NCBI GenBank assembly: GCA_053919585.1
Contig: CM132791.1
Source: Euprymna scolopes
Taxonomy: Eukaryota
DNA: 64,000 nt
Strand: one strand, 5' to 3'
Positions 1-39,819 of this stretch are shown here, one piece after another. The position numbers and the translations under genes were made by a program. The notes beneath the pieces were generated by a model, which was not told the DNA's origin, ran no database searches, and saw only the letters and a list, made by a program, of their open reading frames with translations. Within the stretch, counting starts at the first letter, position 1. Every line of letters starts with the position of its first letter.

Positions 1-3000
1 ACTGGAGGATTTCCCTCCTCACTCCATTCCATAGATACTGGAGNNNNNNNNNNNNNNNNNNNNNNNNNNNNNNNNNNNNNNNNNNNNNNNNNNNNNNNNN
101 NNNNNNNNNNNNNNNNNNNNNNNNNNNNNNNNNNNNNNNNNNNCCCCCCCTCACTCCATTCCATAGATACTGGAGGATTCCCCCCCCCTCACTCCATTCC
201 ATAGATACTGGAGGATTTCCCTCCTCACTCCATTCCATAGATACTGGAGGATTCCCCCTCCCTCACTCCATTCCATAGATACTGGAGGATTTCCCTCCTC
301 ACTCCATTCCATAGATACTGGAGGATTCCCCCCCCTCACTCCATTCCATAGATACTGGAGGATTTCCCTCCTCACTCCATTCATAGATACTGGAGGATTC
401 CCCCCCCTCACTCCATTCCATAGATAATGGAGGATTCCCCTCCTCACTCCATTCCATAGATACTGGAGGATTCCCCCCCCCTCACTTCATTCCATAGATA
501 CTGGAGGATTTCCCTTCCTCACTCCATTCCATAGATAATGGAGGATTTCCCCTCCTCACTCCATTCCATAGATACTGGAGGATTCCCCCTCCCTCACTCC
601 ATTCCATAGATACTGGAGGATTTCCTCTCCCACTCCACTAGATACTGGAGGATTCCCTCCTCACTCCATTCCATAGATACTGGAGGATTCCCCCCCCTCA
701 CTCCATTCCATAGATACTGGAGGATTTCCCTCCTCACTCCATTCCATAGATACTGGAGGATTCCCCTCCTCACTCCATTCCATAGATACTGGAGGATTCC
801 CCCTCCCTCACTCCATTCCATAGATACTGGAGGATTTCCCTCCTCACTCCATTCCATAGATACTGGAGGATTTCCCTCCTCACTCCATTCCATAGATACT
901 GGAGGATTCCCCCCCCCTCACTCCATTCCATAGATAATGGAGGATTTCCCTCCTCACTCCATTCCATAGATACTGGAGGATTTCCCTCCTCACTCCATTC
1001 CATAGATAATGGAGGATTTCCCTCCTCACTCCATTCCATAGATACTGGAGGATTCCCCCTCCCTCACTCAATTCCATAGATACTGGAGGATTTCCCTCCT
1101 CACTCCATTCCATAGATACTGGAGGATTCCCCCTCCCTCACTCCATTCCATAGATACTGGAGGATTTCCCTCCTCACTCCATTCCATAGATACTGGAGGA
1201 TTCCCCTCCTCACTCCATTCCATAGATACTGGAGGATTCCCCCTCCCTCACTCCATTCCATAGATACTGGAGGATTTCCCTCCTCACTCCATTCCATAGA
1301 TACTGGAGGATTCCCCCCCCCCTCACTCCATTCCATAGATACTGGAGGATTTCCCTCCTCACTCCATTCCATAGATACTGGAGGATTTCCCTCCTCACTC
1401 CATTCCATAGATACTGGAGGATTTCCCTCCTCACTCCATTCCATAGATACTGGAGATTTCCCTCCTCACTCCATTCCATAGATACTGGAGGATTTCCCTC
1501 CTCACTCCATTCCATAGATACTGGAGGATTCCCCCCCCCCTCACTCCATTCCATAGATACTGGAGGATTTCCCTCCTCACTCCATTCCATAGATACTGGA
1601 GGATTTCCCTCCTCACTCCATTCCATAGATACTGGAGGATTTCCCTCCTCACTCCATTCCATAGATACTGGAGGATTTCCCTCCTCACTCCATTCCATAG
1701 ATACTGGAGGATTCCCCCTCCCTCACTCCATTTCATAGATACTGGAGGATTTCCCTCCTCACTCCATTCCATAGATACTGGAGGATTCCCCCCTCCCTCA
1801 CTCCATTCCATAGATACTGGAGGATTTCCCTCCTCACTCCATTCCATAGATACTGGAGGATTCCCCCCCCCCTCACTCCATTCCATAGATACTGGAGGAT
1901 TTCCCTCCTCACTCCATTCCATAGATACTGGAGGATTTCCCTCCTCACTCCATTCCATAGATAATGGAGGATTTCCCTCCTCACTCCATTCCATAGATAC
2001 TGGAGGATTTCCCCTCCTCACTCCTTCCATAGATACTGGAGGATTTCCCTCCTCACTCCATTCCATAGATACTGGAGGATTCCCCCCCCTCACTCCATTC
2101 CATAGATACTGGAGGATTTCCCTCCTCACTCCATTCCATAGATACTGGAGGATTCCCCCCCCTCACTCCATTCCATAGATAATGGAGGATTTCCCTCCTC
2201 ACTCCATTCCATAGATACTGGAGGATTCCCCTCCTCACTTCATTCCATAGATACTGGAGGATTCCCCCTCCCTCACTCCATTCCATAGATACTGGAGGAT
2301 TTCCCTCCTCACTCCATTCCATAGATACTGGAGGATTCCCCCCCCCTCACTCCATTCCATAGATACTGGAGGATTTCCCTCCTCACTCCATTCCATAGAT
2401 ACTGGGAGGATTCCCCCCTCACTCCATTCCATAGATAATGGAGGATTCCCCTCCTCACTCCATTCCATAGATACTGGAGGATTCCCCCCCCCTCACTTCA
2501 TTCCATAGATACTGGAGGATTTCCCTCCTCACTCCATTCCATAGATAATGGAGGATTTCCCTCCTCACTCCATTCCATAGATACTGGAGGATTCCCCCTC
2601 CCTCACTCCATTCCATAGATACTGGAGGATTTCCCTCCTCACTCCATTCCATAGATACTGGAGGATTCCCCCCCCTCACTCCATTCCATAGATACTGGAG
2701 GATTTCCCTCCTCACTCCATTCCATAGATACTGGAGGATTCCCCTCCTCACTCCATTCCATAGATACTGGAGGATTCCCCCTCCCTCACTCCATTCCATA
2801 GATACTGGAGGATTTCCCTCCTCACTCCATTCCATAGATACTGGAGGATTTCCCTCCTCACTCCATTCCATAGATACTGGAGGATTCCCCCCCCCTCACT
2901 CCATTCCATAGATAATGGAGGATTTCCCTCCTCACTCCATTCCATAGATACTGGAGGATTTCCCTCCTCACTCCATTCCATAGATAATGGAGGATTTCCC

Positions 3001-6000
3001 TCCTCACTCCATTCCATAGATACTGGAGGATTCCCCCTCCCTCACTCCATTCCATAGATACTGGAGGATTTCCCTCCTCACTCCATTCCATAGATACTGG
3101 AGGATTCCCCCTCGCTCACTCCATTCCATAGATACTGGAGGATTTCCCTCCTCACTCCATTCCATAGATACTGGAGGATTCCCCTCCTCACTCCATTCCA
3201 TAGATACTGGAGGATTCCCCCTCCCTCACTCCATTCCATAGATACTGGAGGATTTCCCTCCTCACTCCATTCCATAGATACTGGAGGATTCCCCCCCCCT
3301 CACTCCATTCCATAGATACTGGAGGATTTCCCTCCTCACTCCATTCCATAGATACTGGAGGATTTCCCTCCTCACTCCATTCCATAGATACTGGAGGATT
3401 TCCCTCCTCACTCCATTCCATAGATACTGGAGGATTTCCCTCCTCACTCCATTCCATAGATACTGGAGGATTTCCCTCCTCACTCCATTCCATAGATACT
3501 GGAGGATTCCCCCCCCCTCACTCCATTCCATAGATACTGGAGGATTTCCCTCCTCACTCCATTCCATAGATACTGGAGGATTTCCCTCCTCACTCCATTC
3601 CATAGATACTGGAGGATTTCCCTCCTCACTCCATTCCATAGATACTGGAGGATTTCCCTCCTCACTCCATTCCATAGATACTGGAGGATTCCCCCTCCCT
3701 CACTCCATTTCATAGATACTGGAGGATTTCCCTCCTCACTCCATTCCATAGATACTGGAGGATTCCCCCTCCCTCACTCCAATTCCATAGATACTGGAGG
3801 ATTTCCCTCCTCACTCCATTCCATAGATACTGAAGGATTCCCCCCCCTCACTCCATTCCATAGATACTGGAGGATTTCCCTCCTCACTCCATTCCATAGA
3901 TACTGGAGGATTTTCCTCCTCACTCCATTCCATAGATAATGGAGGATTTCCCTCCTCACTCCATTCCATAGATACTGGAGGATTTCCCCTCCTCACTCCA
4001 TTCCATAGATACTGGAGGATTTCCCTCCTCACTCCATTCCATAGATACTGGAGGATTCCCCCCCCCCTCACTCCATTCCATAGATACTGGAGGATTTCCC
4101 TCCTCACTCCATTCCATAGATACTGGAGGATTCCCCCCCCCCCTCACTCCATTCCATAGATAATGGAGGATTTCCCTCCTCACTCCATTCCATAGATACT
4201 GGAGGATTCCCCTCCTCACTTCATTCCATAGATACTGGAGGATTCCCCCTCCCTCACTCCATTCCATAGATACTGGAGGATTTCCCTCCTCACTCCATTC
4301 CATAGATACTGGAGGATTCCCCCCCCCCTCACTCCATTCCATAGATAATGGAGGATTTCCCTCCTCACTCCATTCCATAGATACTGGAGGATTTCCCTCC
4401 TCACTTCATTCCATAGATACTGGAGGATTCCCCCTCCCTCACTCCATTCCATAGATACTGGAGGATTTCCCTCCTCACTCCATTCCATAGATACTGGAGG
4501 ATTCCCCCCCCTCACTCCATTCCATAGATAATGGAGGATTTCCCTCCTCACTCCATTCCATAGATACTGGAGGATTTCCCCTCCTCACTTCATTCCATAG
4601 ATACTGGAGGATTCCCCCTCCCTCACTCCATTCCATAGATACTGGAGGATTTCCCTCCTCACTCCATTCCATAGATACTGGTGGATTCCCCCCCCCCTCA
4701 CTCCATTCCATAGATAATGGAGGATTTCCCTCCTCACTCCATTCCATAGATACTGGAGGATTTCCCTCCTCACTTCATTCCATAGATACTGGAGGATTCC
4801 CCCTCCCTCACTCCATTCCATAGATACTGGAGGATTTCCCTCCTCACTCCATTCCATAGATACTGGAGGATTCCCCCCCCCCCCTCACTCCATTCCATAG
4901 ATACTGGAGGATTTCCCTCCTCACTCCATTCCATAGATACTGGAGGATTCCCCCCCCCCTCACTCCATTCCATAAATACTGGAGGATTTCCCTCCTCACT
5001 CCATTCCATAGATACTGGAGGATTTCCCTCCTCACTCCATTCCATAGATACTGGAGGATTCCCCCCCCTCACTCCATTCCATAGATACTGGAGGATTTCC
5101 CTCCTCACTCCATTCCATAGATACTGGAGGATTTCCCTCCTCACTTCATTCCATAGATACTGGAGGATTCCCCCTCCCTCACTCCATTCCATAGATACTG
5201 GAGGATTTCCCTCCTCACTCCATTCCATAGATACTGGAGGATTCCCCCCCCCCTCACTCCATTCCATAGATACTGGAGGATTTCCCTCCTCACTCCATTC
5301 CATAGATACTGGAGGATTCCCCCCCCTCACTCCATTCCATAGATAATGGAGGATTTCCCTCCTCACTCCATTCCATAGATACTGGAGGATTTCCCTCCTC
5401 ACTTCATTCCATAGATACTGGAGGATTCTCCCTCCCTCACTCCATTCCATAGATACTGGAGGATTTCCCTCCTCACTCCATTCCATAGATACTGGAGGAT
5501 TCCCCTTCCTCACTTCATTCCATAGATACTGGAGGATTCCCCCTCCCTCACTCCATTCCATAGATACTGGAGGATTTCCCTCCTCACTCCATTCCATAGA
5601 TACTGGAGGATTCCCCCCCTCACTCCATTCCATAGATAATGGAGGATTTCCCTCCTCACTCCATTCCATAGATACTGGAGGATTTCCCTCCTCACTCCAT
5701 TCCATAGATACTGGAGGATTTCCCTCCTCACTCCATTCCATAGATACTGGAGGATTCCCCTCCTCACTCCATTCCATAGATACTGGAGGATTCCCCCCTC
5801 CCTCACTCCATTCCATAGATACTGGAGGATTTCCCTCCTCACTCCATTCCATAGATACTGGAGGATTCCCCCCCCCCCTCACCCCATTCCATAGATAATG
5901 GAGGATTTCCCTCCTCACTCCATTCCATAGATACTGGAGGATTCCCCCCCCCTCACTCCATTCCATAGATAATGGAGGATTTCCCTCCTCACTCCATTCC

Positions 6001-9000
6001 ATAGATACTGGAGGATTTCCCTCCTCACTCCATTCCATAGATACTGGAGGATTTCCCTCCTCACTCCATTCCATAGATACTGGAGGATTCCCCCCTCCTC
6101 ACTCCATTCCATAGATACTGGAGGATTTCCCTCCTCACTCCATTCCATAGATACTGGAGGATTTCCCCCCCCCCCTCACTCCATTCCATAGATAATGGAG
6201 GATTTCCCTCCTCACTCCATTCCATAGATACTGGAGGATTTCCCTCCTCACTCCATTCCATAGATACTGGAGGATTTCCCTCCTCACTCCATTCCATAGA
6301 TACTGGAGGATTTCCCTCCTCACTCCATTCCATAGATACTGGAGGATTTCCCTCCTCACTCCATTCCATAGATACTGGAGGATTCCCCCCCCCCCCCTCA
6401 CTCCATTCCATAGATAATGGAGGATTTCCCTCCTCACTCCATTCCATAGATACTGGAGGATTTCCCTCCTCACTCCCATTCCATAGATAATGGAGGATTT
6501 CCCTCCTCACTCCATTCCATAGATACTGGAGGATTCCCCCTCCCTCACTCCATTCCATAGATACTGGAGGATTTCCCTCCTCACTCCATTCCATAGATAC
6601 TGGAGGATTCCCCCCCCCTCACTCCATTCCATAGATACTGGAGGATTTCCCTCCTCACTCCATTCCATAGATACTGGAGGATTCCCCTCCTCACTCCATT
6701 CCATAGATACTGGAGGATTCCCCCTCCCTCACTCCATTCCATAGATACTGGAGGATTTCCCTCCTCACTCCATTCCATAGATACTGGAGGATTCCCCCCC
6801 CTCACTCCATTCCATAGATACTGGAGGATTTCCCTCCTCACTCCATTCCATAGATACTGGAGGATTTCCCTCCTCACTCCATTCCATAGATACTGGAGGA
6901 TTTCCCTCCTCACTCCATTCCATAGATACTGGAGGATTTCCCTCCTCACTCCATTCCATAGATACTGGAGGATTTCCCTCCTCACTCCATTCCATAGATA
7001 CTGGAGGATTCCCCCCCCCCTCACTCCATTCCATAGATACTGGAGGATTTCCCTCCTCACTCCATTCCATAGATACTGGAGGATTTCCCTCCTCACTCCA
7101 TTCCATAGATACTGGAGGATTTCCCTCCTCACTCCATTCCATAGATACTGGAGGATTTCCCTCCTCACTCCATTCCATAGATACTGGAGGATTCCCCCTC
7201 CCTCACTCCATTCCATAGATACTGGAGGATTTCCCTCCTCACTCCATTCCATAGATACTGGAGGATTCCCCCCCCCCTCACTCCATTCCATAGATACTGG
7301 AGGATTTCCCTCCTCACTCCATTCCATAGATACTGGAGGATTCCCCTCCTCACTCCATTCCATAGATACTGGAGGATTTCCCTCCTCACTCCATTCCATA
7401 GATACTGGAGGATTCCCTCCTCACTCCATTCCATAGATACTGGAGGATTCCCCCCCTCACTCCATTCCATAGATACTGGAGGATTTCCCTCCTCACTCCA
7501 TTCCATAGATACTGGAGGATTCCCCTCCTCACTCCATTCCATAGATACTGGAGGATTCCCCCCTCCCTCACTCCATTCCATAGATACTGGAGGATTTCCC
7601 TCCTCACTCCATTCCATAGATACTGGGGGATTCCCCCCCCCCTCACTCCATTCCATAGATACTGGAGGATTTCCCTCCTCACTCCATTCCATAGATACTG
7701 GAGGATTCCCCTCCTCACTCCATTCCATAGATACTGGAGGATTCCCCCTCCCTCACTCCATTCCATAGATACTGGAGGATTTCCCTCCTCACTCCATTCC
7801 ATAGATACTGGAGGATTCCCCCCCCCCTCACTCCATTCCATAGATACTGGAGGATTTCCCTCCTCACTCCATTCCATAGATACTGGAGGATTTCCCTCCT
7901 CACTCCATTCCATAGATACTGGAGGATTTCCCTCCTCACTCCATTCCATAGATACTGGAGGATTTCCCTCCTCACTCCATTCCATAGATACTGGAGGATT
8001 TCCCTCCTCACTACCATTCCATAGATACTGGAGGATTCCCCCCCCTCACTCCATTCCATAGATACTGGAGGATTTTCCCTCCTCACTCCATTCCATAGAT
8101 ACTGGAGGATTTCCCTCCTCACTCCATTCCATAGATACTGGAGGATTTCCCTCCTCACTCCATTCCATAGATACTGGAGGATTTCCCTCCTCACTCCATT
8201 CCATAGATACTGGAGGATTTCCCTCCTCACTCCATTCCATAGATACTGGAGGATTCCCCCCCCCTCACTCCATTCCATAGATACTGGAGGATTCCCCTCC
8301 TCACTCCATTCCATAGATACTGGAGGATTTCCCTCCTCACTCCATTCCATAGATACTGGAGGATTCCCCCCCTCACTCCATTCCATAGATACTGGAGGAT
8401 TTCCCTCCTCACTCCATTCCATAGATACTGGAGGATTCCCCTCCTCACTCCATTCCATAGATACTGGAGGATTTCCCTCCTCACTCCATTCCATAGATAC
8501 TGGAGGATTTCCCCCCCCTCACTCCATTCCATAGATACTGGAGGATTTCCCTCCTCACTCCATTCCATAGATACTGGAGGATTCCCTCCTCACTCCATTC
8601 CATAGATACTGGAGGATTCCCCCCCTCACTCCATTCCATAGATACTGGAGGATTTCCCTCCTCACTCCATTCCATAGATACTGGAGGATTTCCCCTCCTC
8701 ACTCCATTCCATAGATACTGGAGGATTTCCCCCCCTCACTCCATTCCATAGATACTGGAGGATTTCCCTCCTCACTCCATTCCATAGATACTGGAGGATT
8801 CCCTCCTCACTCCATTCCATAGATACTGGAGGATTTCCCTCCTCACTCCATTCCATAGATACTGGAGGATTTCCCTCCTCACTCCATTCCATAGATACTG
8901 GAGGATTCCCCTCCTCACTCCATTCCATAGATACTGGAGGATTTCCCCTCCTCACTCCATTCCATAGATACTGGAGGATTTCCCTCCTCACTCCATTCCA

Positions 9001-12000
9001 TAGATACTGGAGGATTCCTCCCTCCCTCACTCCATTCCATAGATACTGGAGGATTTCCCTCCTCACTCCATTCCATAGATACTGGAGGATTTCCCCCCCC
9101 TCACTCCATTCCATAGATACTGGAGGATTTCCCTCCTCACTCCATTCCATAGATACTGGAGGATTCCCCTCCTCACTCCATTCCATAGATAATGGAGGAT
9201 TTCCCTCCTCACTCCATTCCATAGATACTGGAGGATTCCCCCCCCCTCACTCCATTCCATAAATACTGGAGGATTTCCCTCCTCACTCCATTCCATAGAT
9301 ACTGGAGGATTTCCCTCCTCACTCCATTCCATAGATACTGGAGGATTTCCCTCCTCACTCCATTCCATAGATACTGGAGGATTCCCCCCCCCTCACTCCA
9401 TTCCATAGATACTGGAGGATTTCCCTCCTCACTCCATTCCATAGATACTGGAGGATTTCCCTCCTCACTTCCATTCCATAGATACTGGAGGATTCCCTCC
9501 CTCACTCCATTCCATAGATACTGGAGGATTTCCCTCCTCACTCCATTCCATAGATACTGGAGGATTCCCCCCCCTCACTCCATTCCATAGATAATGGAGG
9601 ATTTCCCTCCTCACTCCATTCCATAGATACTGGAGGATTTCCCTCCTCACTCCATTCCATAGATACTGGAGGATTTCCCTCCTCACTCCATTCCATAGAT
9701 ACTGGAGGATTTCCCTCCTCACTCCATTCCATAGATACTGGAGGATTTCCCTCCTCACTTCATTCCATAGATACTGGAGGATTTCCCTCCTCACTCCATT
9801 CCATAGATACTGGAGGATTTCCCTCCTCACTCCATTCCATAGATACTGGAGGATTTCCCTCCTCACTCCATTCCATAGATACTGGAGGATTTCCCTCCTC
9901 ACTTCCATTCCATAGATACTGGAGGATTCCCCCCCCCCTCACTCCATTCCATAGATACTGGAGGATTTCCCTCCTCACTCCATTCCATAGATACTGGAGG
10001 ATTTCCCTCCTCACTCCATTCCATAGATACTGGAGGATTTCCCTCCTCACTCCATTCCATAGATACTGGAGGATTTCCCTCCTCACTTCATTCCATAGAT
10101 ACTGGAGGATTTCCCTCCTCACTCCATTCCATAGATACTGGAGGATTTCCCTCCTCACTCCATTCCATAGATACTGGAGGATTTCCCTCCTCACTTCATT
10201 CCATAGATACTGGAGGATTTCCCTCCTCACTTCATTCCATAGATAATGGAGGATTTCCCTCCTCACTCCATTCCATAGATACTGGAGGATTTCCCTCCTC
10301 ACTCCATTCCATAGATACTGGAGGATTTCCCTCCTCACTCCATTCCATAGATACTGGAGGATTTCCCTCCTCACTCCATTCCATAGATACTGGAGGATTT
10401 CCCTCCTCACTTCATTCCATAGATACTGGAGGATTTCCCTCCTCACTCCATTCCATAGATACTGGAGGATTTCCCTCCTCACTCCATTCCATAGATACTG
10501 GAGGATTTCCCTCCTCACTCCATTCCATAGATACTGGAGGATTTCCCTCCTCACTCCATTCCATAGATACTGGAGGATTTCCCTCCTCACTCCATTCCAT
10601 AGATACTGGAGGATTTCCCTCCTCACTCCATTCCATAGATACTGGAGGATTTCCCTCCTCACTCCATTCCATAGATACTGGAGGATTTCCCTCCTCACTC
10701 CATTCCATAGATACTGGAGGATTTCCCTCCTCACTCCATTCCATAGATACTGGAGGATTTCCCTCCTCACTTCATTCCATAGATACTGGAGGATTCCCCC
10801 CCCTCACTCCATTCCATAGATACTGGAGGATTTCCCTCCTCACTCCATTCCATAGATACTGGAGGATTCCCCCCCCCTCACTCCATTCCATAGATAATGG
10901 AGGATTTCCCTCCTCACTCCATTCCATAGATACTGGAGGATTCCCCCCCCTCACTCCATTCCATAAATACTGGAGGATTTCCCTCCTCACTCCATTCCAT
11001 AGATACTGGAGGATTTCCCTCCTCACTCCATTCCATAGATACTGGAGGATTTCCCTCCTCACTCCATTCCATAGATACTGGAGGATTCCCCCCCCCTCAC
11101 TCCATTCCATAAATACTGGAGGATTTCCCTCCTCACTCCATTCCATAGATACTGGAGGATTTCCCTCCTCACTCCATTCCATAGATACTGGAGGATTTCC
11201 CTCCTCACTCCATTCCATAGATACTGGGGGATTCCCCCCCCCTCACTCCATTCCATAGATACTGGAGGATTTCCCTCCTCACTCCATTCCATAGATACTG
11301 GAGGATTTCCCTCCTCACTTCATTCCATAGATACTGGAGGATTCCCCCTCCCTCACTCCATTCCATAGATACTGGAGGATTTCCCTCCTCACTCCATTCC
11401 ATAGATACTGGAGGATTCCCCCCCCCCTCACTCCATTCCATAGATAATGGAGGATTTCCCTCCTCACTCCATTCCATAGATACTGGAGGATTTCCCTCCT
11501 CACTCAATTCCATAGATACTGGAGGATTCCCCCCCCCTCACTCCATTCCATAGATACTGGAGGATTTCCCTCCTCACTCCATTCCATAGATACTGGAGGA
11601 TTTCCCTCCTCACTTCATTCCATAGATACTGGAGGATTCCCCCTCCCTCACTCCATTCCATAGATACTGGAGGATTTCCCTCCTCACTCCATTCCATAGA
11701 TACTGGAGGATTTCCCTCCTCACTTCATTCCATAGATACTGGAGGATTCCCCCTCCCTCACTCCATTCCATAGATACTGGAGGATTTCCCTCCTCACTCC
11801 ATTCCATAGATACTGGAGGATTCCCCCCCCCCTCACTCCATTCCATAGATAATGGAGGATTTCCCTCCTCACTCCATTCCATAGATACTGGAGGATTTCC
11901 CTCCTCACTCAATTCCATAGATACTGGAGGATTCCCCCCCCTCACTCCATTCCATAGATACTGGAGGATTTCCCTCCTCACTCCATTCCATAGATACTGG

Positions 12001-14572
12001 AGGATTTCCCTCCTCACTTCATTCCATAGATACTGGAGGATTCCCCCTCCCTCACTCCATTCCATAGATACTGGAGGATTTCCCTCCTCACTCCATTCCA
12101 TAGATACTGGAGGATTCCCCCCCCCCTCACTCCATTCCATAGATAATGGAGGATTTCCCTCCTCACTCCATTCCATAGATACTGGAGGATTCCCCCCCCC
12201 CTCACTCCATTCCATAGATACTGGAGGATTTCCCTCCTCACTCCATTCCATAGATACTGGAGGATTTCCCTCCTCACTCCATTCCATAGATACTGGAGGA
12301 TTTCCCTCCTCACTCCATTCCATAGATACTGGAGGATTCCCCCCCCCCTCACTCCATTCCATAAATACTGGAGGATTTCCCTCCTCACTCCATTCCATAG
12401 ATACTGGAGGATTTCCCTCCTCACTCCATTCCATAGATACTGGAGGATTTCCCTCCTCACTCCATTCCATAGATACTGGAGGATTCCCCCCCCCCTCACT
12501 CCATTCCATAGATACTGGAGGATTTCCCTCCTCACTCCATTCCATAGATACTGGAGGATTTCCCTCCTCACTTCATTCCATAGATACTGGAGGATTCCCC
12601 CTCCCTCACTCCATTCCATAGATACTGGAGGATTTCCCTCCTCACTCCATTCCATAGATACTGGAGGATTCCCCCCCCCTCACTCCATTCCATAGATAAT
12701 GGAGGATTCCCCCTCCCTCACTCCATTCCATAGATACTGGAGGATTTCCCTCCTCACTCCATTCCATAGATACTGGAGGATTCCCCCCCCCTCACTCCAT
12801 TCCATAGATAATGGAGGATTTCCCTCCTCACTCCATTCCATAGATACTGGAGGATTTCCCTCCTCACTCCATTCCATAAATACTGGAGGATTTCCCTCCT
12901 CACTTCATTCCATAGATACTGGAGGATTTCCCTCCTCACTCCATTCCATAAATACTGGAGGATTTCCCTCCTCACTCCATTCCATAAATACTGGAGGATT
13001 TCCCTCCTCACTTCATTCCATAGATACTGGAGGATTCCCCCCCCCCTCACTCCATTCCATAAATACTGGAGGATTTCCCTCCTCACTCCATTCCATAAAT
13101 ACTGGAGGATTTCCCTCCTCACTTCATTCCATAGATACTGGAGGATTCCCCCCCCCTCACTCCATTCCATAAATACTGGAGGATTTCCCTCCTCACTCCA
13201 TTCCATAAATACTGGAGGATTTCCCTCCTCACTTCATTCCATAGATACTGGAGGATTCCCCCCCCCTCACTCCATTCCATAAATACTGGAGGATTTCCCT
13301 CCTCACTCCATTCCATAGATACTGGAGGATTTCCCTCCTCACTCCATTCCATAGATACTGGAGGATTTCCCTCCTCACTCCATTCCATAGATACTGGAGG
13401 ATTTCCCTCCTCACTCCATTCCATAGATACTGGAGGATTTCCCTCCTCACTCCATTCCATAGATACTGGAGGATTTCCCTCCTCACTCCATTCCATAGAT
13501 ACTGGAGGATTTCCCTCCTCACTTCATTCCATAGATACTGGAGGATTCCCCCCCCCTCACTCCATTCCATAGATACTGGAGGATTTCCCTCCTCACTCCA
13601 TTCCATAGATACTGGAGGATTCCCCCCCCCTCACTCCATTCCATAGATAATGGAGGATTTCCCTCCTCACTCCATTCCATAGATACTGGAGGATTCCCCC
13701 CCCCTCACTCCATTCCATAAATACTGGAGGATTTCCCTCCTCACTCCATTCCATAGATACTGGAGGATTTCCCTCCTCACTCCATTCCATAGATACTGGA
13801 GGATTTCCCTCCTCACTCCATTCCATAGATACTGGAGGATTCCCCCCCCCCCCCTCACTCCATTCCATAGATACTGGAGGATTTCCCTCCTCACTCCATT
13901 CCATAGATACTGGAGGATTTCCCTCCTCACTTCATTCCATAGATACTGGAGGATTCCCCCTCCCTCACTCCATTCCATAGATACTGGAGGATTTCCCTCC
14001 TCACTCCATTCCATAGATACTTGAGGATTCCCCCCCCCCTCACTCCATTCCATAGATACTGGAGGATTTCCCTCCTCACTCCATTCCATAGATACTGGAG
14101 GATTCCCCCCCCCTCACTCCATTCCATAGATAATGGAGGATTTCCCTCCTCACTCCATTCCATAGATACTGGAGGATTTCCCTCCTCACTTCATTCCATA
14201 GATACTGGAGGATTCCCCCTCCCTCACTCCATTCCATAGATACTGGAGGATTTCCCTCCTCACTCCATTCCATAGATACTGGAGGATTCCCCCCCCCCTC
14301 ACTCCATTCCATAGATACTGGAGGATTTCCCTCCTCACTCCATTCCATAGATACTGGAGGATTTCCCTCCTCACTTCATTCCATAGATACTGGAGGATTC
14401 CCCCTCCCTCACTCCATTCCATAGATACTGGAGGATTTCCCTCCTCACTCCATTCCATAGATACTGGAGGATTCCCCCCCCCTCACTCCATTCCATAGAT
14501 AATGGAGGATTTCCCTCCTCACTCCATTCCATAGATACTGGAGGGTTTTCCTCCTCACTCCATTCCATAGAT
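1..14572. repeat. Satellite DNA array, 36-bp monomer ACTGGAGGATTTCCCTCCTCACTCCATTCCATAGAT (~400 copies) with C-run variants
   Basis: Uninterrupted head-to-tail monomers. Main variation is in the central C-rich segment (TTTCCCTCCTC, TTCCCCCTCCCTC, TT-Cn-TC), plus recurring point variants GATAATGG, CACTTCATT and ATAAATACT. Confidence 0.98.
44..143. other. Assembly gap (100 N) inside the satellite array
   Basis: Run of exactly 100 N with the same satellite monomer on both sides, so the true array length is unknown. Confidence 0.98.
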
Positions 14573-15075
14573 ACTGGAGGGTTTCCCCCTTCCCACTCCA
14601 TTGCATAGATACTGGAGGGTTTCCCCCTTCCCACTCCATTGCATAGATACTGGAGGGTTTCCCCCCTTCCCACTCCATTGCATAGATACTGGAGGGTTTC
14701 CCCCTTCCCACTCCATTCCATAGATACTGGAGGGTTTCCCCCTTCCCACTCCATTCCATAGATACTGGAGGGTTTCCCCCTTCCCACTGCATTCCATAGA
14801 TACTGGAGGGTTTCCCCCTTCCCACTCCATTCCATAGATACTGGAGGGTTTCCCCCTTCCCACTCCATTCCATAGATAGTGGAGGGTTCCCCCTTCCCAC
14901 TCCATTCCATAGATACTGGAGGATTTCCCCCTTCCCACTCCAATTCATATATACTGGAGGGCCCCCTTCCATTCCATCCCATAGATAATGGATGATTCCA
15001 CCCACTGCATTCCCTAGATACCCAAGGGTTTCCCCGCACTCTATTTCCTAGATACTGAAGGGTTTTCTACTCTAA
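14573..15075. repeat. Diverged 38-bp edge subtype of the same satellite, decaying into unique DNA
   Basis: About 10 copies of ACTGGAGGGTTTCCCCCTTCCCACTCCATTCCATAGAT (period 38, e.g. 14,726 to 14,764), then about 3 increasingly degenerate copies. Confidence 0.93.
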
Positions 15076-15717
15076 TATCTTCTGTCTTCAGACTGCTTAC
15101 CTTTGGAATTTCGTCCCTACTCCCTGTTTACTCAACCATAATAATATGCAGAAATGTAAATGTTATTTGAACAAATGTTTTGATCCCCTATTATAAATCT
15201 GGCCTCTATCCTAGTAGCCTCCTCAATGGCAATAAACCGTATTTATAGTGAATAAAAAATTTAAAAAAATAAAACAGTTTAGAGATTTTGTTTACAAAGT
15301 GTAAACCTATAAAATAGATTCGTCTTCAAACCAATCCTATACTAAACATGTACGATTTCAGCATAAAATGATCCAATGGTGGTTTACATGATCTAAACCC
15401 CAAGAAACAACCATTATGTTCACAAAATCCTATTTGGAATTAAATGTGCTATTGAAGAAAAAAATTAATTATCATTTTTATTCTGTTAATTTGTTTTTCA
15501 TTAAGATTTATTAAAACTCAATCCGTAAAAAAAATAAGTATGTAGATTAATTTTACTTCCATTATTGTAATGATGGAACACTAAAACGTTTATAATAGTT
15601 ATACATGTTACTTAGGTATTTTGTTGCAATAAAAACAGAATTTTGCTTTATTATCGGACTATATTTTTTTATTTTTTAAAATTATTTTTATATTTTTTTA
15701 ATTATTTATCTTTTTTT

Positions 15718-16162
15718 TAATTAACTTAATTATTTCTGTTTTGAATTAACCTAATTATTTCTGTTTTGAATTAACTTAATTATTTCTGTTTTGAATTAAT
15801 TTTAATATTTCTGTTTTGAATTAATTTTAATATTTCTGTTTTGAATTAATTTTAATATTTTTGTTTTGAATTAATTTTAATATTTCATTTTTGAATTAAT
15901 TTTAATATTTCATTTTTGAATTAATTTTAATATTTCGTTTTTGAATTAATTTTAATATTTCGTTTTTGAATTAATTTTAATATTTCGTTTTTGAATTAAT
16001 TTTAATATTTCGTTTTTGAATTAATTTTAATATTTCGTTTTTGAATTAATTTTAATATTTCGTTTTTGAATTAATTTTAATATTTCGTTTTTGAATTAAT
16101 TTTAATATTTCGTTTTTGAATTAATTTTAATATTTCGTTTTTGAATTAATCGTAATATTTCT
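15718..16162. repeat. 25-bp AT-rich minisatellite (GAATTAATTTTAATATTTCGTTTTT), ~17-18 copies
   Basis: Clear 25-bp period, with gradual change from TTAACTTAATTATTTCTGTTTTGAA on the left to the CG-containing form on the right. Confidence 0.95.
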
Positions 16163-16183
16163 TTTTCTGTTTTACAGGTAAGT
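16161..16183 (+). promoter_or_regulatory. Candidate recursive splice site (ratchet point): pyrimidine tract-CAG|GTAAGT
   Basis: CTTTTTCTGTTTTACAG is followed directly by the consensus donor GTAAGT. There is no AG dinucleotide between 15,639 and 16,175. Confidence 0.55.
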
Positions 16184-16219
16184 CTTCAATAATTCAAGCA
16201 TTGGTAATGTATAACTCAC

Positions 16220-16255
<36 letters not shown>

Positions 16256-17189
16256 ATGTGGTTCATGTTATATTAGAAGTAATTGCGAATATGATGTTGC
16301 TAATCATGTTAGATCGTTGACTTCGTGGTACATGATGGTATGGACGTTTGTAAAATGAAATTAGTCGGTTCGTGACTTCTTTTGTCTTCTAATTATTTAT
16401 TATTTGTTTAATTAAAAAAGTCTTTAATTCTAGTTTTCCTAATAAGTGGTTTTTCATGTTCGACATAATTGTTGTTTACATCATCACTTTTGGCAACCAA
16501 GATAACTCTCTGGGTTATTATTTTAATTTTAGAAATTTAAAAAATAAAATTTTTAAATGCACATTAAAGATGACTCCTTTAAGACTTTTTGGAACATTAA
16601 TTTTAAATGTACATTTTTAAAATACATTTTTTACATAAATTATATCTACATAAACAATAATTAAAAGGGGCTCATCATAAGACCCAATCGTCAGAAGTGT
16701 ATCCTTATCTCGTTTGTCTGTATGTATTTGAATACAGTATCATCATTTTTTTTTTTTTATTACACCAGAATATTCTTAAATGGATGTATTTTTCTGTTTA
16801 AATTATTTCTTTTCATCTAAAAGAATATTTAACCATGTGTGTGCATACAAGATCTTATGTATTGGTTCGGCTCTGTTCCAATTCCAAGAATTTGATTTTT
16901 TTTTTTTTAATCTGATTTCAAATGTTTAAGCTGTTGGATTAGAAAATATTGTTTTGTTTTTTAATTAGTTTACTTCAGGCTTTGTAATTAATTAAACACC
17001 AGGAAAATTTTAGTTGCATATAAATACAACAGTCTTTGAAAAAAAAAAAAGCTCTATGCAATTGCATCATTGGAAAATTTCACACAAGGTTAGTTAAGCA
17101 AGAAAATGAAATTTTCCATTAGTGACCAAGTTAGAAGTTAGGTTGATGTATAGCAGTAATTGTGTCACGGCAGAAAGTATGTGGAAGAA

Positions 17190-32070: not shown

Positions 32071-32394
32071 GAATTTCAGTCTATAAATAAAATTGTAGGC
32101 TTCAAATAAGTGTAAATTTCTCATCAATCTCGTCTTATCAACTAATAATTATAGCCATTGTAAAATATTGGGCAATATCTCATTACCTTTTAAAAACATA
32201 TACAAAAATGACATAGAAGCATTAATTTGACTGTTCATATAAGATTCATTTCAATAGCTAACACATTGAATCCTCTTAATATGATTCATAGAACATTAGA
32301 AATCAAATTAGATTTTTCTTACAATAGTAAAAAAAACCCAGATTTTGAACAAGTAAAAACGTGCAAGAACAAAATTTTATAATAATTGAAATAT

Positions 32395-32700
32395 TATATG
32401 GTATAATCATGTTGACACACCCATCAGATCACTGAAGTTAAGCAACATTGAGCCTGGTCAGTACTAAAATGGGTAACTATTTGGGAATTCCAGGTGCTGT
32501 ATGTGTTCCCCGCTTATCTCAGCATTGTTTCCAATCTCCAGTCTTTCCAGTCTTGGGCTTGCCACTGGACCCAACTATGCTGATTCAAGAGAGGTGTGGT
32601 TGGGGATTGTACATCCTCTTGCCTCACAATTGCATGAGCAATTACCTTTACAGAGGTGTCCATTGTCTCTTGAGACTGAACGGAGGCATCGCAGTTAAAA
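32395..32700 (+). mobile_element. 5S rRNA-derived SINE-like element (5S head 32,395-32,503 plus non-5S body)
   Basis: GATCACTGAAGTTAAGCAAC..GCCTGGTCAGTACT..ATGGGTAAC..TGGGAATTCCAGGTGCTGTA follows animal 5S rRNA with many substitutions. No oligo-T terminator; continues into a ~200-bp GC-richer body. Confidence 0.75.
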
Positions 32701-39673: not shown

Positions 39674-39709
<36 letters not shown>

Positions 39710-39734
39710 TGGCTTGAGGCAGTTGCCTGACTAG

Positions 39735-39770
39735 CTGCACTAATGAGCTGCGAAACAGTACTGTATGTGG
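39735..39770 (+). ncRNA. Type I hammerhead-ribozyme-like motif with G5A core change, in a 68-bp island within (TA)n
   Basis: Stem I CUGCA/UGUGG, core CUAAUGA (consensus CUGANGA), minimal stem II G-CUG-C, GAAA, palindromic stem III ACAGUACUGU, cleavage triplet GUA. Confidence 0.55.
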
Positions 39771-39772
39771 AT

Positions 39773-39819
<47 letters not shown>

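Follow-up and report, generated by a model that had tools for sequence, protein, structure and literature searches.

How cells remove introns of hundreds of kilobases is an open question. Flies use fixed ratchet points, at which an acceptor joined directly to a donor allows an intron to be removed in steps, whereas vertebrates barely do, and a lungfish preprint found no shift to recursive splicing in a 40-Gb genome. A 64,000-nucleotide stretch of the Euprymna scolopes genome (GCA_053919585.1, contig CM132791.1; hereafter the window) contains such an acceptor-donor junction, which raises the question of whether it is a chance motif or a recursive splice site within a giant intron. The initial annotation proposed the latter, and inferred that the exon-free window, including a 15-kb satellite beside the site, is transcribed on the + strand and removed stepwise at this point. 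Here, we show that the motif belongs to a strongly non-random, strand-coherent genome-wide class with the sequence hallmarks of fly-type ratchet points, from which we infer, on sequence evidence alone, that this large mollusc genome probably removes its giant introns in 60-500 kb steps.

Results

To establish whether the motif is present as described, we examined the sequence directly. The reported juxtaposition is confirmed: a pyrimidine tract ends in CAG and runs straight into GTAAGT, and a weaker donor-like G|GTAATG follows 26 nt later (Table 1). Two points of the original description required correction. First, the satellite is 1.1 kb from the site, not directly beside it, and its true length exceeds the annotated array by an undetermined amount because it continues about 3.6 kb upstream of the window across an assembly gap. 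Second, the site directly abuts a separate minisatellite, whose unit resembles the site's own pyrimidine tract and whose last, degenerate unit runs into that tract. About 650 bp of unique AT-rich DNA lie between the satellite and the minisatellite.

Table 1. Coordinates of the site and of other features. Unprefixed positions are those of the window, with negative values upstream of it; C9, C25 and so on are contigs of the assembly, the window being on C9.
Location	Strand	Feature	Observation
16158-16177	+	Predicted recursive 3' splice site	Tract with 16/20 pyrimidines, TTTT at -5 to -8, ending in CAG; matches Y11-N-Y4-N-CAG|GTAAGT
16178-16183	+	Predicted regenerated 5' splice site GTAAGT (ratchet-point donor)	9/9 match to CAG|GTAAGT with the preceding CAG; invariant in the three paralogous copies
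16178-16203	+	Putative cryptic recursive-splice exon, 26 nt	Not a multiple of 3; two of three frames contain stop codons; 80-91% identity between paralogues over +1..+45
16204-16209	+	Weaker downstream donor GTAATG, preceded by G, that would define the cryptic exon	A 13-nt run around it is invariant in all three paralogues
16146-16150	+	Candidate branch point TTAAT, inferred only	A at 16149, 29 nt before the junction
16153-16284	+	Block homologous to the two paralogous copies on C25	78-87% identity; homology between the two C25 copies extends about 130 nt further upstream
15713-16166	.	25-bp minisatellite, 18 copies	Free of AG; grew out of the sequence just 5' of the pyrimidine tract; lacking in the paralogues
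145-15065	.	36-bp satellite, 407 copies in the window	Pyrimidine-rich on +; 0 GTRAG on + and 393 on -; would be part of the intron segment ending at 16177
44-143	.	100-N assembly gap inside the satellite	Left unfilled; satellite continues upstream of it
-58704	+	AGGTRAGW with at least 16/20 pyrimidines upstream
81573	+	AGGTRAGW with at least 16/20 pyrimidines upstream	Unique in the genome
C9:34568764, 34674455, 34922158, 34987553	+	Strict sites	34922158 is the site studied here
C9:34063347	+	GTGAGT-type site	May extend the unit to about 0.9 Mb
C25:13004647, 13883988	+	The other two copies of the 35-nt core	Both donors kept
C25:12711591, 13004630, 13883971, 13995798	+	Four-site cluster containing both paralogues	Cluster spans C25:12711591-13995823
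C12:34430205-36303412	-	Largest cluster	Nine sites over 1.9 Mb
C17:112182578-112873002	+	Cluster	Six sites
C19:71855506-72410143	+	Cluster
C3:73233033-73682235	-	Cluster
C12:34430173, 34692664, 34782234, 35125845, 35776959	-	Near-identical paralogous sites	Within one cluster
C13:5952453/5963575		Near-identical paralogous sites
C21:55209243 with C23:65560658		Near-identical paralogous sites	Between chromosomes
32394-32505	+	Match to 5S rRNA	61.9 bits
23350-24435	-	361-aa ORF with reverse-transcriptase domain	RVT_1, E = 8.6e-31
-35660 to -31000; 84030 to 88140		Two multi-kb low-complexity arrays	Pyrimidine-rich on +, as is the 36-bp satellite
C9:98188781-111278693	-	Nine homeodomain exons	Spaced 1.1-2.6 Mb apart
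C9:151231200-151284428	+	Three tandem full-length PDEase_I matches	Inside uninterrupted 801-955-aa open frames
C9:74167813-74170542	+	Four homeodomains	In one 2105-aa open frame

Because the tract resembles the adjacent repeat unit, we first took the site for a chance motif in repeat-rich, untranscribed or intergenic DNA, in which an AT-rich, T-rich minisatellite edge happens to be followed by CAGGTAAGT. Consistent with this idea, the short form Y4-N-CAG|GTAAGT is barely above chance and strand-symmetric in the 5.9-Gb genome, with 1296 + 1307 = 2603 occurrences against 1154 + 1155 = 2309 for the reversed control (1.13-fold). An excess over the chance rate had been named in advance as a test of the recursive-splicing interpretation, and we repeated the search with the tract that this site actually has. 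The resulting strict pattern, Y11-N-Y4-N-CAG|GTAAGT, occurs 90 + 74 = 164 times, against 7 + 6 = 13 for the control, a 12.6-fold excess; thus, only about 8% of such sites are expected by chance, and a chance strict match is expected in about 1 of 7,000 windows. The broader form YAG|GTRAGT gives 464 occurrences against 85. By our estimate, ordinary exons that happen to start with GTAAGT, or donors preceded by a pyrimidine-rich exon end, should contribute only a handful of sites. However, 21 of the 164 strict sites, most of them singletons, are pure T16-17 runs and may be poly(A)-tail artefacts of retroelements.

The site also predates the minisatellite. The 35-nt core spanning both donors has exactly three copies in the genome, and the two on C25 carry the tract, the junction and the second donor without the repeat. 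Together with the enrichment and clustering described below, this led us to reject the chance reading as unlikely. The exact copy number likewise excludes a high-copy transposon carrying the motif. We also considered a U1 snRNA gene or pseudogene on the - strand, because the reverse complement of CAGGTAAGT equals the U1 5' end; this was rejected because there was no Rfam hit and the following bases do not resemble U1. The Rfam scan of the window, at gathering thresholds, found no ribozyme either, although a hammerhead-ribozyme-like island in (TA)n had been proposed at 39708-39775. It did return the 5S rRNA match, but about 240 bp including this stretch are 75% identical to a stretch near the C25 paralogue, in inverted orientation, and so a 5S-derived dispersed repeat is more likely than a working 5S gene.

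To determine whether the strict sites are distributed at random, we merged the complete lists from both strands by contig. Forty-seven pairs of neighbouring sites lie less than 1 Mb apart, where about 4.5 are expected for 164 random points in 5.9 Gb, and all 47 pairs share a strand; at 1-3.5 Mb the agreement falls to 4 of 7. The sites form 26 clusters holding 73 sites. In the portion of the broader list that was examined, extra sites extend the same clusters on the same strand: all 28 neighbour pairs under 1 Mb agree, as do 11 of 11 pairs joining a strict site to a non-strict one. Several clusters contain near-identical copies of one element (junction, about 30-nt cryptic exon and second donor), for example five on C12, and part of the clustering therefore reflects local duplication rather than independent selection. 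Such copies, found both within clusters and between chromosomes, may be copied cassettes or the conserved remnants of duplications. The clusters probably mark giant, unannotated transcription units and their strand.

The site studied here is one of four strict + strand sites in C9:34.57-34.99 Mb, and a fifth, slightly weaker site lies 75 kb upstream; same-strand sister sites flank it at -337, -231, -59 and +65 kb. Three extra same-strand sites within +/-420 kb compare with 0.012 expected (P about 3e-7). We read 100 kb on each side of the window and scanned all 264 kb for AGGTRAGW. Of 11 occurrences on the + strand, three have at least 16/20 pyrimidines upstream, whereas none of the 14 on the - strand has even 14/20; taken alone, this local contrast is weak (binomial P = 0.03). 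The series of steps is then about 106, 173, 75 and 65 kb; the 131 kb between C9:34674475 and 34806000 lay beyond the sequence read and may hold further weaker sites. The C9 sites share only the motif. This cluster is therefore not a product of recent duplication, and a large segmental duplication as its source was rejected.

To assess whether the second donor is particular to this site, we examined the sequence downstream of every strict site. GGTRA occurs 17-47 nt after the junction in 49 of 164 (30%), against about 5.7 expected from an empirical chance of 3.3-3.6% in the region, an enrichment of about 8.6-fold. After collapsing obvious paralogue families about 41 remain, still far above chance.

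The three copies of the core allow a further reading, in which the site is an inert relic of a small low-copy duplicated or transposed fragment (about 200-240 bp) that carries a splice-like motif by descent and lies in clusters incidentally. Homology covers only about 130-240 bp, the flanks are unrelated and TE-rich (mostly other transposons), other class members also form small paralogue families, and invariant runs of 9 and 13 nt are not unusual at 78-87% identity. Nevertheless, we consider this reading unlikely. All three copies lie on the strand of independent, non-paralogous neighbouring sites (C9:34674455 and 34987553, and C25:12711591 and 13995798), identity is highest across the junction and cryptic exon, and homology fades within about 100-130 nt on either side, which is what selection on a small element would leave. 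This comparison is among paralogues of one genome.

Other features are consistent with + strand splicing. The 539 nt upstream of the acceptor AG contain no AG, and the satellite, read on the + strand, offers acceptor-like pieces but no donors. T exceeds A on the + strand in 21 of 24 10-kb bins, but the two C25 loci do not agree with each other on this skew, and we therefore give it little weight as evidence of transcription.

No host exon was recognised in the 264 kb. Scans for long ORFs and exon-like candidates found only retroelement fragments on both strands, including LINE fragments related to the RVT_1 ORF in the window, and an exact-protein look-up found nothing; thus, that the site is intronic is inferred only from the clustering. 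Searches with guessed host families gave only two suggestive same-strand co-locations: a PDE gene on C23 about 1.1 Mb downstream of a site (PDEase_I) and a homeobox exon on C30 about 215 kb downstream of a site (Homeodomain). The same searches revealed three further loci on C9 (Table 1). The nine homeodomain exons, spread over 13 Mb on one strand, look like a hugely expanded Hox series, as expected for a decapodiform cephalopod; the PDEase_I matches appear to be intronless phosphodiesterase copies; and the four homeodomains in one frame suggest a multi-homeodomain (zfh-like) gene with a giant exon.

Discussion

The site is most likely a genuine intronic ratchet point inside a giant + strand transcription unit of at least about 420 kb, spanning C9:34.57-34.99 Mb, a reading that we hold to be more probable than not. 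Every prediction of the initial annotation that could be tested on sequence alone came out in its favour, but its interpretation is only partly supported, as no spanning transcript, recursive junction, saw-tooth coverage profile or lariat underlies it. What our analysis establishes is the motif, its non-chance genome-wide class, the same-strand clustering, the class-wide second donor and the conservation in paralogues; that the region is transcribed, that the site is actually used, and what gene hosts it remain matters of inference.

By analogy with Drosophila, we propose that RNA polymerase II would transcribe the + strand through the satellite, and that the cryptic exon would be recognised through its strong acceptor and weak downstream donor. 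The upstream exon, or the previously regenerated donor, would then be spliced to 16178, removing the ~75-kb segment that holds the satellite. In this view, that junction recreates a perfect donor, which out-competes the weaker one at 16204 and is spliced to the next site 65 kb downstream, at 81573, such that nothing from this site remains in the mRNA.

An alternative is that the site is an expressed or regulated recursive-type exon, such as an alternative micro-exon, a poison exon, or a splice site of a long non-coding or piRNA-precursor transcript, so that the 26-nt piece (or a longer one using another donor) would sometimes be kept in the RNA. The layout of acceptor, regenerated donor and second donor is the same as in expressed recursive exons of flies and vertebrates, and the unidentified nature of the host transcript leaves room for it. 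However, the length and the stops in two frames argue against coding inclusion, and the combination of a perfect regenerated donor with a weak second donor favours skipping in flies; we therefore regard this alternative as unlikely.

If the class found here is used, a 5.9-Gb mollusc genome follows the fly solution at about ten times the fly's segment length, including across satellite-filled segments. More tentatively, and with less than even likelihood, this large cephalopod-type genome may divide its giant introns with a few hundred fly-type ratchet points spaced 60-500 kb apart that also exist as families of small paralogous cassettes made of acceptor, regenerated donor, cryptic exon and second donor, such as this site with its two C25 copies, the five copies within the C12 cluster and the C21/C23 pair. 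Under this reading, new ratchet points would arise by copying existing ones as introns expand. A literature search found no report of recursive splicing in cephalopods or molluscs.

The closest known systems are the Drosophila intronic ratchet points, or zero-nucleotide recursive splice sites (Hatton 1998; Burnette 2005; Duff 2015; Joseph 2018/2021). These share the consensus (Y)n-N-CAG|GTAAGT with TT at -5/-6, which Duff et al. report in 99.5% of fly sites, as well as strong enrichment over a control, several sites per locus on one strand, host regions that are very long and, as far as read here, exon-free, and a short cryptic exon closed by a donor weaker than the regenerated one, as described by Joseph et al. 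The present site matches these at the level of sequence. In contrast, spacing is 65-173 kb at this locus and up to about 500 kb elsewhere, where fly segments average about 18 kb; clusters span up to 1.9 Mb; the 26-nt cryptic exon is shorter than the ~50 nt typical of flies; and several sites exist as families of paralogous copies within and between loci, which we did not find described for flies. Vertebrate recursive-splice exons (Sibley 2015; Blazquez 2018) also have an acceptor followed by a regenerated donor plus a downstream donor in very long neuronal-type introns, with donor competition deciding the outcome, but vertebrates have few fully silent sites and little sense-strand motif enrichment (ratio 1.5 or less), whereas enrichment in this genome is strong and fly-like. 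Finally, Shepard et al. (2009; PMC2773006) used the same kind of sequence-only evidence, an excess of combined acceptor-donor sites relative to a control strand, in annotated introns of five invertebrates. We instead used a reversed-pattern control plus strand-coherent clustering, and the class shows the kind of enrichment reported for large introns of invertebrates but not vertebrates.
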